DNA of 61,737 nucleotides, the filler included, from Choristocarpus tenellus KU-1152 (taxonomy: Eukaryota > Protista > Phaeophyceae): assembly GCA_964200185.2 (NCBI GenBank). It is 11 parts of 11 records of this genome, joined end to end, with 100 filler letters (N's around TTAATTAATTAA, not from the genome) between each part and the next. Parts side by side here need not be neighbours in the genome. Positions count along the whole stretch, not along the records: positions 1 to 5,327 come from CAXNAD020011145.1; 10 more parts are not named here. The stretch is one strand, 5' to 3'. Of the stretch, positions 1-5,327 are shown in pieces. Position numbers and translations under genes: made by a program. Position 1 is the first letter of the stretch. Every line of letters begins with the position of its first letter. The notes under the pieces were generated by a model. That model was not told where the DNA came from. It saw only the letters and a program-made list of their open reading frames with translations, and did not search any database.

Positions 1-41
1 CCAAATGGACAGCCGCCACCCCCTCCCAGATACTTTGAGTC
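1..41 (+). mobile_element. MITE family B right end (similar stubs at 10741-10757 and 15570-15594)
   Basis: CCAAATGGACAGCCGCCACCCCCTCCCAGATACTTTGAGTC matches the family B right end. Confidence 0.85.
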
Positions 42-162
42 AATGTTAAATATATAGGATTTTGCAGACAAATTTTGATAGGAAGAGTGTATACTCCTAT
101 CCGAAGCAGAGCACTCCACACAAGTTGGCATGAGACGTTTTGTTTGCATCCTGTTGATCATG

Positions 163-396
163 TCTATTAAATAGCACTTACCTGATTCACATACTGATTT
201 TATATTTGCAGTCGCTGGAGAAGAATTTGGTGCCATTATCTGTATAATTTTAATAGCTGTATTTGCATTTATAGTATTAAAAACTCTGATTAGATTAAAC
301 AGTGAAGGTGATAAATTTGTCCAGTTAGCTGCCGTTGGTATTATCACTCAATTTGGACTGCAAGCTACAATTAACATGGGAGTAACACTAAATTTA
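163..396 (+). pseudogene. ftsW: Bacterial (Rickettsiales-like) FtsW / SEDS peptidoglycan polymerase C-terminal fragment, pseudogenised
   Basis: Frame +1 reads SIK*HLPDSHTDFIFAVAGEEFGAIICIILIAVFAFIVLKTLIRLNSEGDKFVQLAAVGIITQFGLQATINMGVTLNL. It contains the FtsW/RodA signature LP.xHTDFIFAV.GEE.G and Q..IN.GV...L. There is a stop at 172-174, and the sequence ends before the expected PTKGxxLPFxSYGGSS. AT-rich and intronless; not in the ORF track. Confidence 0.88.
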
Positions 397-3300
397 GGTA
401 CTGTGCATCAAATGGACTATAGTGTTGCGCTAAACAATATTAATGTTTTAGTGTAGAGACGAAAAATGTTTTTACATGAACCTCTGTACCCGATCATCAA
501 CAAAATGTAATTTTTACACACAGAACATTATTTTTATCGTGGTTTGCCGTACCTATTAATACCAGACTTGTAACTGTAAATTTGAAAGGTGCTTACAGAT
601 TTGTCATTCTATTATTACAAGTTTACATTTTTTTCCTCGACTGTTTATTTCAAGTTCATTACAGTTCATAAAAATAAACATTGGTGTGGTGTTTGTTTCT
701 AATCACCACATCCGACAAACTAACTGGAACAAAATATTTAAAGGACTAGGATGATCCAACTGTGAGCTATCCATACGTGAATGAGCTTTAGTAAAAAATA
801 GGACACATTCAAGGTGCAAAAGTCGAAACATAGAAACGGAACATAGCATTGCTAGATATTCAACGATGAATCGTATAGTAACGTGTAAGACTATTTGTGG
901 AATAGGTTGCTCTAATGGTTCTTTGTGAGAATTCTGATAGGCTGGAGGAACGTCAAAAGGGGAAAGGGACCGAGCAGGTGGTGGGGGTAGGTGTGTGTGT
1001 TTGATTTTGTACAGGGTCTGCCCAAGAGTGTGTAGAGGTGGTGAACCTATGCACCCTTCCACATGCGCACATGCATGTGTTGCCTGCAGCTTAACGAATA
1101 GCTACGGTGACTTTTCCATCTTCGGTTGGGGCCTTGTTCTCTCCTTCTCGGTACCTTTTCGCTTTTTCGCTCTCGTCCATTTGTCACTTTTGGGCAACTC
1201 ATTCTCTCCTTGACTGTCAGACGTGGAAATCCCTCCCATCAATCTTCCCCTGGTGGATCTCGACAATAGGGAACTTACTGAACCTTCTCTATTCCAAAGG
1301 ATGATATTGTGTTGGTACATACAGTTCATTGTTGCACCACCCATCTACTGCGCAGGAGTCTGTGTATACCATAAATAGATCCATTTTAAAATGAAAGTTT
1401 ACGCCGTTACGTGACTTTTACAACTCTTCAGGAAAGGTTAGAAGGTGAGGCTGCAAGTGACTTGAATTGTGCTTAGTAGTTGCACCTGAGAGAGCTTAGA
1501 TAATGCGCCACAGGGGAGGTATCTAAGACCTTCGTATGTAATTTGCTACCAGTTCTACCACTCACTTTCTTTCCTTTTTTCAGGTTGTCAATTACCAAAC
1601 ATCTTCCGTCTTCCTAAACCTTGAGAAGGGTGAATGAGACTGTAGTGATGTGTCGCCAAGGGGGATGTAGGCCCTTTTGTGTTGGAGATCCATATTTGTC
1701 TTGATAATCGGTTCCACTACAATATCGATCAGTGGCTCGCTTCAAGCATATTGTCTTGAACGAACCAGAACTATACAGTTTCCGTTTGAGGGCCACGATG
1801 CAGTGGACAGGCAGGGAAACCCTGTGATATTTTTTTGTCACTTTTTCGCACGCATTTTTGAAACCCCATCTCTAATTCCAAACTCTAACTCTAACTCGTG
1901 TGTGGAAAATATCTCTATCCAGTCAAGGAAACATTTCTAGCGAAAGTGGTGGAGGACTGTAGTGTGCATTGTGGAACCAAGACCTCTCAAGGACCCACCA
2001 GTTTTCACTTTTCCACACTCATTATGTTTGAGAATGTATCGCTAACTCTAACCCTTATCTGTGTGTGAAAAATAACTTTGAGTTTGTTTGAAGAAGTGAA
2101 AAAATATGCCAGTAGTGGGGCGTCCCCAAGGACAGTGGGGCTTCTTAAGATGGGGGACGTTCAAGTCCACTTCAGCCGTTGACCTTTTTCTGTTTTGTTG
2201 TTCGTCATTATGCAGACTCACCTTTTTTTCTTGATGAAGCATAAATTCTTGTTCGTACTACTATACTACATATTAATGGTTGGTCGTATTACATGAAGGA
2301 GTGTGTTTCGAACTTCGATTTGAAGTACAACAGTAGTAGTTGTAGTCTGTACTCTGACGTCTATGTTAGACCGATCAAAGTTTGTCACAGTACATTTGGA
2401 GCATCGAAGATGTTGCTGAAGGGGACATTCGGATATCGACGTGCGGCCTCTCTATTTTCTATAAAGTCTTCTCCACTGTCATTCTATACGGCTTTGCTCG
2501 ACAAGCCTACAAGAGAAGGAGAGGATGAGACGACTGTTGTGGGCAAGGTGGGTGGGGATGATCCGCAATTGACACCTAGTCTCCTTCACCTTTCAGTCAT
2601 CTAGAAAAGTAATTTCCCAGGGCTCCTAATCATGATGTAAACATCGAAATGTTACCCGCTACACATTGCATTGACCCGCCTCCTTGACAGGTTTTGGAGC
2701 ACGCTGTTGATCTCCAACGAGCGCGACCAGGGGAAGTAATCAAGATTCCTTATGAAGTGACTGTGGCCAGCGGGTAAGACCGGGAGAGCTCATGGTACTC
2801 GAGGAGAAACTCGGCCTCCTTTGTGGGTTCGCGTTCACCAACGATCGTTCCTCCGGTGCTGCACAAATATTGTAGAAGGGACACGCTCGAATCCACGTTC
2901 TAGCGCCCATCGTTAATGTGGAAAGTCTCTGCATGCATCAAGGTCGACATCCTCACCATATGCACCTCTAATGTCATTAATCATCATCCTTCCCAAAGCA
3001 CCCCCCACTAGCTCGGAAGCCCACCTTCGAAGCTATACTCTTTCAAACTCCAACAAAATCTCCGAATTTACCCTTGGAACCAGACTGCGAGACTTTTGGC
3101 AGGCGGCATTCTACTCTCATGATAGGATTACCACCAGTACTCCCTTCGCCAGGTCCTTGGGCCTTCAGGATCAGGTCGGTATGCCACAATATTTTTAAGA
3201 GTCTAATTTTAGTGTCCTGCCCCAATTTTTGACACACTAAATCTTCATACGATACTTGGCGTGTTTACGAATGACAGGTGGATCGGGTTGGGCTCGTCTG

Positions 3301-4269
3301 TGTAAGTTTATTATAGTTCCCACATGCTGGTGCGTGTATAGATCATAGGCCGTGGAATCTATTCTGAGGACATTTTGTACACGAATATCCTCTCCAATAG
3401 TGCTTACAATTGTATGCTGATTTATTTTCTACCGTCCAAGATCCTGGCCTGTGTCATCCCCTCTCCAACTAATGTGCTGAGACTTGCAGACACCTTGCAC
3501 AAAAATCAAGCATGTGCTGCATATAGCATATTGCAATGTGTGGTTTTATAATATCTTCCGGGTTAGATTCCTCCTTCAACCCTGACAAATGTATCCATTA
3601 ACACCACCACTCTTCTACATGGTAATTGTCATTTGTCTGTCCTCCCATTCTCCTTACCGTTTTTGCACCTGTAACGATGGATGTATTATCTACACAGGTC
3701 CTACCTTTTTCACTTATGCTGTACTTAGCCTCTAGCATGTCTCATGCTGAGGCTGCAGTCGTTCAGGTGGCATATCGGAATGCAAAGTACCTTTGGCCCG
3801 GCTTTGCAGGTTTGTCTAGTTCAGCAACATAATTTACATTCACTGGATGCTTTTGCTCAGGGATATCTCGAAGGTGCCCCAACCCATTAAAGAACAGCTT
3901 GTATGCATTCGTGCGAATTTGGGCATGACACTAAGCAGGTGTCTGGGTGTTGCCTCTTACACAGAAAGGAAGATACCACGTATTGTTTGTTTCTGCAGTA
4001 TTGTGCCTGAAGCATGGACTACCCAGGTTGGCTCCAGGGTGTGGCTAAAGGAAGAGACAACTGCCTCGATACACCAGTTGCTTCTCATGCTCTTCTCCAG
4101 TAACATAGCTGCAGACCCTGCGGCCGCAAAGTCGACCTGAAGAGCCTGCATGCAACTCACCGCCTTAAATCGGATTCGATTTGCTGGCGTTGCCTCTTGT
4201 GTTTTGTTTGCTTCGCTGCTGCGGTTTGTATGTGTTGGCGCGTGTGAATTGTGTTGCTTGACCAATCAG

Positions 4270-4545
4270 GCGACACGTTCACGAAAACATTTGAGATCAA
4301 GCGCATTCGAAACACGTCTGGTGGGGAGACCAGTACATTCGACTTCACCTGCAGGCTCGTGAACCAGCGGGGCAAGATATGTCTTCAGTGTGACAAGACG
4401 ATGATGTTCCCATTCTTTGCACCACCCTCAGCCGGTTGGGCGGCCGACTCTGTATCAATGGAGGAGTGGGGGAAGGCAGGAGGAGAGAGTGGACTCTGTC
4501 AAGATGGTTTGAAGGACCACATTGTTAAGCAGGCCGAGAAATTGG
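4270..4545 (+). CDS. Internal exon of a hot-dog-fold (MaoC-like dehydratase) protein, possibly a stramenopile MaoC/CitE-type fusion
   Basis: AG acceptor at 4268-69, GT donor (GTGAGT) at 4546, 276 nt, symmetric phase 1. Reads GDTFTKTFEIKRIRNTSGGETSTFDFTCRLVNQRGKICLQCDKTMMFP..., resembling the MaoC GDT...NQ.G motif region. Confidence 0.6.
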
Positions 4546-5192
4546 GTGAGTCTCTGCAGTGATGTTTTTGTCATTGAAAAGGGCATGGCAGCAGCGATGG
4601 GATGACCTTTGCAGCGCTGCCGATACCTTGCCAGAAATTCTTTTTTTATTGTAAATTCTTATTATTATATTGTTTTGTCGCTAGTGTTTTGCGTTCATTG
4701 TTGTTGTGGAATGTTTAGTGTGGTTACTATCGTGTTTTGTGTCGTGGTACTGGAACAGATGCATTGGAAGGCGATATGACGGGGGAAAAAAAAAAGAAGA
4801 GAGGGGGTTACTTGTGTATTGGCTATCAATACGACATTACAAGTCTAGCCAGTGCATTTTTTAGGTTAAAAGTGGGCTGAGGCTTTCTGTAGTAAGCTAA
4901 GCCCTGTAGAATCGTATTGTGATCCCCTTCCTTTCCTCAAGGTTCCACGCAGTTTGCCGGGGTCGATGAAGTTTCGCTCCGAGAGCGGTCACCGTATGGT
5001 GCAATAGCATCATTGCATGTTTCTAATCAATGGGAAGGGATTTGTTTCAGTAATGTGGCATTAGCTACCATGAATTGTGTCGGGGAAAACTTTCCTTTGC
5101 GAAACTTGAAGAATCGTCAAGAGTTGCATTGTGTTCTTGTATTGTATTCTTAAGTCCTTGACATCTATAACTGCTGGTATTCATACTGTCCA

Positions 5193-5252
<60 letters not shown>

Positions 5253-5327
5253 CCTTCCCCCCTTCTCTCTCCACCATTCCACCCACTTATCCCCAAATCT
5301 CACATCTCACCACTTGCCTTTTCTTTA

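Follow-up and report, generated by a model that had tools for sequence, protein, structure and literature searches.

A short stretch of bacterial cell-division sequence near the end of a contig of the brown alga Choristocarpus tenellus raises the question whether DNA of an intracellular bacterium was built into the nuclear genome of this alga, or whether the sequence came to stand there in some other way. It lies at positions 163–396 of the window, by which we mean the whole stretch of 61,737 nucleotides that was analysed; the part that matters here, positions 1–5,327, is a single contig (CAXNAD020011145.1, or C11145) of the C. tenellus assembly of 164 Mb and 27,310 contigs. A first-pass annotation had described an AT-rich piece of ftsW of 234 bp, with a premature stop and truncated at both ends, whose wording resembled FtsW of Rickettsiaceae, and had explained it as a piece of symbiont DNA that was captured and is decaying. 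The evidence given below makes it very probable that the stretch is a true remnant, within the nuclear genome, of ftsW from a Megaira-like member of the Rickettsiaceae.

The fragment is read on the plus strand and its 234 bases form 78 codons, corresponding to residues 252–329 of the approximately 377 residues of FtsW. In-frame translation of window 154–420 gives LIMSIK*HLPDSHTDFIFAVAGEEFGAIIC...INMGVTLNLGTVHQMDY, and that of 163–396 itself SIK*HLPDSHTDFIFAVAGEEFGAIICIILIAVFAFIVLKTLIRLNSEGDKFVQLAAVGIITQFGLQATINMGVTLNL; the two remaining forward frames are full of stops. The Pfam profile PF01098 (FtsW/RodA/SpoVE) is matched over positions 247–318 of 356 with 54.9 bits at a cut-off of 26.4 (E 9.3e-15), and among the NCBIfam models ftsW (E 3.8e-21) comes out ahead of rodA (E 4.7e-18). 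The whole-protein cut-off of TIGR02614 (ftsW), 337.5 bits, is not reached by the 75.6 bits obtained, because the fragment has only 73 of the 357 profile positions. When 1.84 billion representative proteins were searched exhaustively with phmmer, 2971 matches with E ≤0.001 were returned, the best at 1.8e-21, and the similarity is thus far beyond chance. Five alphaproteobacterial genomes, of which three bear the label Rickettsiaceae, each contain one gene that the fragment matches at 59–66% and a second one at 31–34%; the better-matching gene is annotated as FtsW and stands within a murD-ftsW-murG row, and the other is RodA. The fragment is an ortholog of FtsW, not of RodA, and the original description of an ftsW piece is confirmed. 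An organellar origin was considered and rejected, as PF01098 matches neither the plastid contig C1 nor contig C71 (32.3 kb, with a full-length 16S gene), which was taken as the mitochondrial genome. On C1, two full-length 16S genes lie in inverted orientation, and the product of its red-type rbcL, 488 residues long, is identical to RbcL of C. tenellus, which identifies the host.

The premature stop and the truncation were likewise found as described. A TAG at 172–174 (+) occupies codon 4 of the 78, where relatives have Gln and read ..(I/V)KQ(H/V)LPDS... The similarity sets in at 163 and has its last position at 396. Relatives have G(P)GEG ahead of the residues equivalent to SIK, and after LNL every relative goes on with (I/L)PTKGMTLPF; both are absent from the window. 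The two ends are real breakpoints, and the 3' one sits just ahead of PTKGMTLPF, the most conserved motif. With the TAG in frame, and with this motif and all beyond it missing, there is no complete reading frame for FtsW (about 375 residues), and window 163–396 is a gene fragment and not a member protein of the FtsW family. Its GC content is 32%, and the value of 18% at third positions is like that of Rickettsiaceae genes and unlike that of the flanks. In a DNA search of window 42–1000 against eight Rickettsiaceae genomes, 178–396 was the sole match, at 70–76% identity. Reading frames from 80 alphaproteobacterial ftsW loci matched nothing else on the window contig or on the other ftsW-bearing contigs, and those from 60 kb of the Megaira genome around ftsW gave no further matches on the window or on these contigs. 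Since neither the reading frame searches nor the DNA search matched anything at 397–800, this AT-rich sequence is not recognisably bacterial.

As to the donor, all 80 genome matches to the fragment are from Alphaproteobacteria, with the best non-Rickettsiales at 62–64% identity. In a sample of 251 Rickettsiales genomes, the top group shows 70–78% identity and comprises, by exact look-up of its members, Rickettsia (typhi, oklahomensis and the bellii group), Ca. Tisiphia and Ca. Megaira polyxenophila. Among metagenome contigs, a scan yielded sequence L146 with 92% protein identity, L226–L228, which include a SOLA coastal marine sample, with 90%, and further relatives with 84–85%, one of which is from Tara Oceans; at the DNA level, the nearest ftsW of uncultured Rickettsiaceae is 79–80% identical. 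The metagenome relatives have intact ftsW reading frames of 377 residues, and the named ones carry the label 'Rickettsiaceae bacterium' MAGs. The nearest cluster is found in ENA assemblies, where ftsW is again part of a murD-ftsW-murG row; one of these is labelled SOLA22-1, which we take to refer to the SOLA coastal station. The sequences ENA ERZ1764467 k141_24476433 and IMG Ga0209345_10026774 belong to the bins of the nearest relatives. In the main FtsW tree (LG+C20, 38 rows), the fragment groups with Ca. Megaira polyxenophila and uncultured Rickettsiaceae in one clade (support 100/97), as sister to the pair of L146 and the SOLA sequence (88/65) on a branch of 0.11, and Rickettsia and Tisiphia form the sister clade (98/95) of this Megaira-side clade. 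Trees built before the metagenome sequences were included also pointed to Rickettsiaceae and left the exact place near Megaira unsettled. Matches and tree together show that the fragment belongs to the Megaira-side clade of the Rickettsiaceae, by which the donor family that had been proposed from the wording of the protein is supported and sharpened. Ca. Megaira consists of several genus-level clades (Davison et al. 2023, PMC10132079), and the donor fits a poorly sampled member of it, outside clade A.

The way in which the fragment differs from L146 is informative about its age in the host. Over the 78 codons, the two differ at 11 first, 3 second and 35 third positions (test of evenness, p 4e-8), which amounts to a DNA difference of 21% that is mostly synonymous. 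In view of this third-position excess, most of the difference arose under selection in bacteria. The true donor would be a relative of L146 and not L146 itself, and neutral change since the insertion appears small, at most about 4% if all second-position differences are counted as post-insertion.

For establishing the physical linkage, four public runs of one study contain window sequence, and the contigs of each run, produced with another assembler, were aligned to the window. In run X1, one contig extends over 18–5184 with zero differences and a flat depth of about 21. Run X2, from another sample at about 5x, has a contig over 349–987 that crosses the 3' junction, with depth also over 179–356, again flat. 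Run X3, from a third sample, is RNA-like, with a depth that is very uneven and zero in parts of two introns, and contains a contig of 2734 bases that covers 15–2545 unbroken and is then spliced to 2689–2772 and 3083–3171. The fragment is linked to nuclear DNA: contigs from three samples, which may derive from one culture, cross the junctions, and the RNA contig reaches spliced host exons. This support consists of contigs from one study, with depth as one figure per contig and not as single spanning molecules. The suspected integration is borne out by these crossings and by the flat depth in the two DNA runs. Window 42–1700 is single copy in the assembly, and an allele without the insert (empty site) was not found in it. 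The fourth run (X4), from organism B of the same study, has a few contigs of 151 bases that are identical to window 1223–1515 and 4782–5184 at a depth of 2–3, and otherwise holds the abundant repeat of window 1–41. The scraps look like carry-over between libraries and not like a shared locus; since there are only a few of them, identical and of low depth, besides the repeat, this run is uninformative on other species.

The surroundings of the fragment are those of the host. Window 1–41, which the first-pass annotation labelled a MITE and which is a candidate for one, is where a host repeat of very high copy number ends, its body being to the left of the contig; in X1, word depth is approximately 142,669 over 1–41 and 21.3 for the rest of the contig. 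The boundary of the repeat is sharp, with hundreds of contigs diverging at 39–43 and the sequence ahead of place 3 common to them, and copies of the 1–41 repeat also occur on C14655, C16695 and C4170. On the other side follows an intron-bearing gene on the plus strand. According to the X3 contig, 15–2547 (+) is a transcribed stretch that comprises a long leader and the first known host exon, with the ftsW fragment in sense orientation. The likely coding sequence of the host starts with an inferred ATG at 2293 and continues to 2547 (open reading frame 2293–2604), in frame with the splice donor after 2547 (GGGCAAG|GTGGGT), and there is no long reading frame in the window upstream of this ATG. 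Exons 2 (2691–2773), 3 (3084–3174) and 4 (3698–3809; contig depth 464) are defined by spliced X3 contigs, which skip from 2545 to 2689, 2772 to 3083, 3171 to 3695 and 3806 to 4267, all with GT..AG borders. The last of these joins leads, after shifting the cut by +3, to exon 5 at 4270–4545, followed by the donor TTGG|GTGAGT; the spliceosomal exon that had been annotated at this place is real. The fragment is thus about 1.9 kb upstream of the likely start codon, within the long leader. This leader is transcribed together with the plus-strand host gene, the contig itself being no proof of RNA strand or of continuity over the fragment.

Several observations on the remainder of this contig may be added. 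The host gene at 2293–4545 (+) has at least five exons, the fifth showing high expression in X3 (contig depth 464). A Pfam scan of the host exons, one by one, gave no family, exact look-up of the reading frame 2293–2601 gave no record, and an Atlas look-alike search with exon 5 gave only a weak lead to a hot-dog-fold hydratase (0.89). Window 1781–2136 is a dispersed repeat with telomere-like letters, where the depth of the DNA runs is 3–5 times that of the contig and alternative contigs join 1865 to 2083 through TAACCCTAAACCTAACC. Contigs of all runs stop at 5184, ahead of a run of 55 C at 5195–5249 that is probably the reason for the contig end.

The window fragment is not alone in the assembly. 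A partial screen with ten genes, three of which were chosen as neighbours of ftsW, revealed at least nine Rickettsiaceae-type pieces from five genes (ftsW, murG, murD, uvrA and dnaE), the window piece included. The further pieces are on separate contigs and mostly 50–95 codons long, with recognised lengths of about 75–290 bases over the whole set, and those of murG, murD, uvrA and dnaE are AT-rich; all were found by protein similarity, which favours copies with few amino-acid changes. A second ftsW locus at C3701:4355–4525 covers residues 246–303 with three stops, and C14655:3036–3209 carries a 94%-identical version of it, colinear over 4.4 kb; to judge from this similarity, the two loci would be haplotypes or a recent duplicate. 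A C-terminal, Megaira-like ftsW piece of 24–30 codons at C16695:1097–1168 reads ..GLTKRQNSLVKYK.. where Megaira has GLTKRKASLVKYR. Two murG pieces, both on the minus strand, are located at C4170:3562–3771 (about residues 43–111, ending GFGGYPSFP) and C23755:502–666 (about residues 44–102). The murD piece at C9952:1185–1472 (-) has 30% GC and is 50–54% identical to Rickettsia, 46–51% to Megaira and Tisiphia and 36–47% to other Alphaproteobacteria. The uvrA piece at C1321:6279–6458 (+), with two TGA stops, has 90% identity to Rickettsia and Megaira versus 69–73% to other Alphaproteobacteria, and for the dnaE piece at C1559:332–517 (+) the values are 87% for Megaira versus 74–83% for others. Compared with Megaira polyxenophila, the marine relative L226 is the closer match for every dcw-cluster piece but the short one on C16695. 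In Megaira polyxenophila the five source genes are located at about 207, 219, 334 and 1,501 kb, and therefore the pieces come from around the donor genome. The whole-assembly search that the first-pass annotation had in mind thus turned up more, even in this partial form.

Other candidates did not survive inspection. Short pieces of uvrB, ftsK and virB4 were searched for in the assembly and not found. Matches to mfd and ligA were rejected as relics, as they are colinear multi-exon host genes; the one at C546:4723–15582 (-) is a NAD-dependent DNA ligase (LigA-type, TIGR00575), colinear exon by exon, and is a bacterial-type gene that has the look of an intact host gene with introns. Translation and a check of GC led to the rejection of a weak FtsW-like match at C4170:4734–4949 (E 0.18). 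A rickettsial 16S piece was not found in the assembly, in which no non-organellar 16S match is nearer to Rickettsiaceae: C3948 is an old mitochondrial-like match, C5273 is plastid-like, C9714 is a weak match without assignment, and C13979 (approximately 642–1009) is a 97% copy of the mitochondrial 16S gene in a nuclear contig, i.e. a NUMT.

Could the window fragment owe its position to an assembly error, with Rickettsiaceae reads from a contaminant or symbiont misjoined to algal sequence and without any integration? The Phaeoexplorer project, which includes C. tenellus, filtered bacterial reads before assembly in its short-read assemblies, and its paper counts C. tenellus among the long-read species. 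Strays could remain after the removal of bacterial reads by the published pipeline, and it is contigs, not raw reads, that support the integration. Nevertheless, the junctions are identical in three separately assembled runs, one of them RNA, and a fragment internal to the contig could arise in this way only through two false joins. Moreover, an in-frame stop and a break before the most conserved motif are unlike any live ftsW, and the C3701 piece has its second version on C14655, 5.6% different over 4.4 kb, with an ftsW part that differs by 4/4/3 over the codon positions. A chimera is thus very unlikely. Even less credible is that the stretch is an exon of a nuclear FtsW-type gene that works in the alga or did so recently, the TAG being the end of an intron. 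The TAG at 172–174 can be read as an ..AG acceptor, GT follows at 397–398, and the stretch is transcribed in the sense direction; the RNA contig, however, runs straight through 15–2545 and is unspliced at 174 and 396. Both host copies and the bacteria also share similarity ahead of the TAG (SIK), the contig has no further part of FtsW, the third-position GC of 0.18 is bacterial and not host-like, and the other ftsW copies have several stops. A third route would be an integrating virus or mobile element that carried bacterial DNA into an alga that was never infected. Brown algal genomes hold many viral inserts, which is the sole basis offered for this proposal. Against it, the loci have no common flanks or carrier sequence, in the window the fragment lies between a host repeat and a host gene with introns, and the source of the pieces is five housekeeping genes at scattered places in the donor genome, so that such indirect arrival is as improbable as a chimera.

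If the pieces were taken up from bacterial DNA, the number of events must be considered, since a single murD-ftsW-murG segment that was later copied and broken up would require one transfer and one donor. In the nearest relatives the three genes stand side by side, and the assembly has pieces of each; furthermore, the ftsW loci overlap (residues 246–303 and 252–329), as do the murG loci (about 43–111). The overlapping pairs have no common flanking sequence, however. Between the window copy and the C3701 copy, only the 137 bases derived from ftsW are common (72% identity), and between the two murG copies only 175 bases (79% identity). Their differences are distributed over codon positions as 12/6/22 for ftsW (p 0.007) and 12/1/20 for murG (p 0.0003), which reflects selection on a working protein and not drift, whereas the 4/4/3 of the C3701 and C14655 versions is as expected of drift in the host. 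At third positions, the two ftsW copies are 22 of 45 apart, and 21 and 18 of 45 from the marine relative L146, which is about equal. Detection by protein similarity may inflate the third-position excess, and is unlikely to create a second-position count of 1 in 54. Because of the lack of common flanks and the third-position-heavy differences, the overlapping pieces diverged as working bacterial genes, which in turn argues for at least two Megaira-like donors or transfers. The uvrA and dnaE pieces, from far-off parts of the donor genome, also speak against one segment. An H before LPDS, IICI and IRL were considered as marks of a common insertion and rejected, as these are ordinary residues of the donor clade. 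On balance a single insertion is improbable, though less so than the explanations discussed above, and C. tenellus appears to have acquired Megaira-like DNA on at least two occasions, the donors being different strains or species. The C3701 insertion looks older, as it has three stops and 13% second-position change.

We therefore return to the reading of window 163–396 as a genuine relic. DNA from lysed intracellular bacteria may have been joined into chromosome breaks repeatedly, probably by end joining, and the short lengths of the pieces and the cut inside a conserved motif fit such a capture of degraded DNA. After insertion, the window piece would have drifted only a little and would now be a passenger sequence in a long 5' leader. 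With a stop and no start it presumably has no function of its own and is most likely neutral for the alga. Of the initial explanation, the capture of symbiont DNA stands; it has to be revised from an isolated event to at least nine pieces and at least two donors, and from an ongoing decay to little decay since insertion. The repeated uptake points to a repeated or long-lasting intracellular association.

How far this has gone in C. tenellus can be roughly extrapolated from five pieces per approximately 21 kb of donor coding sequence (ftsW excluded) and a donor genome of 1.3–1.7 Mb. It is conceivable, with chances that we put slightly below even, that the nucleus contains hundreds of pieces of about 150–290 bases, from at least two Megaira-like Rickettsiaceae genomes and from different times of uptake. 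If this is true, a long or repeated intracellular infection is recorded in an early-branching brown algal lineage without a described symbiosis, and the bacterium may still live in the culture; a living symbiont could have been filtered out, and therefore its absence from the assembly says nothing. Dead symbiont DNA in the nucleus is a lasting record of former residents of a cell line. In the present case, a Megaira-like lineage with relatives that are partly from coastal marine metagenomes reached the nuclei of the ancestral cell line of this culture more than once. This offers a handle on the history of symbiosis in brown algae, as other Phaeoexplorer genomes can be screened and the pieces dated through common insertion sites. 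It is also a warning for annotators and for contamination filters, since short AT-rich bacterial islands in such assemblies can be genuine.

Among the papers searched, none pairs Choristocarpus tenellus with Rickettsiales and none reports such a relic for brown algae, and the main text of the Phaeoexplorer preprint does not mention Rickettsia. Ca. Megaira comprises symbionts of algae and ciliates, and the one link between it and a brown alga found in these papers is a Ca. Megaira genome recovered from the sequencing project of Nemacystus decipiens (Davison et al. 2023, PMC10132079). That study describes bacterial genomes of Megaira, and the words 'nuclear' and 'horizontal' are absent from its main text.

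The closest known case is Volvox carteri, of which the nucleus contains a Rickettsiaceae region of about 9 kb with 16S rRNA, murB, ddlB and ftsQ, with reading frames that are intact in some strains (2015, PMC4324946). As in C. tenellus, nuclear genes from the cell-wall and division cluster of Megaira-type Rickettsiaceae are read as traces of infection, with the inference that there was more than one donor (PMC4324946). The difference is that C. tenellus is a brown alga, thus a stramenopile, that its pieces are short and scattered over contigs, and that no rickettsial 16S piece was found among them. In insects and nematodes, Wolbachia has left many nuclear pieces that are mostly dead, stem from repeated transfers and are in some cases transcribed as passengers. 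Wolbachia inserts often measure kilobases to megabases and are nearly identical to the resident symbiont, whereas the C. tenellus pieces are very short and the closest known bacterium has approximately 80% DNA identity. NUMTs and NUPTs are likewise short, dead fragments of a resident genome that have been inserted into chromosomes, as illustrated by the NUMT on C13979 in the same assembly, with the difference that the source of the present pieces is not an organelle. The ftsW fragment and its companions are a known kind of non-functional relic; new are the host group, the scattering of pieces this short, and the evidence that the donors were more than one.
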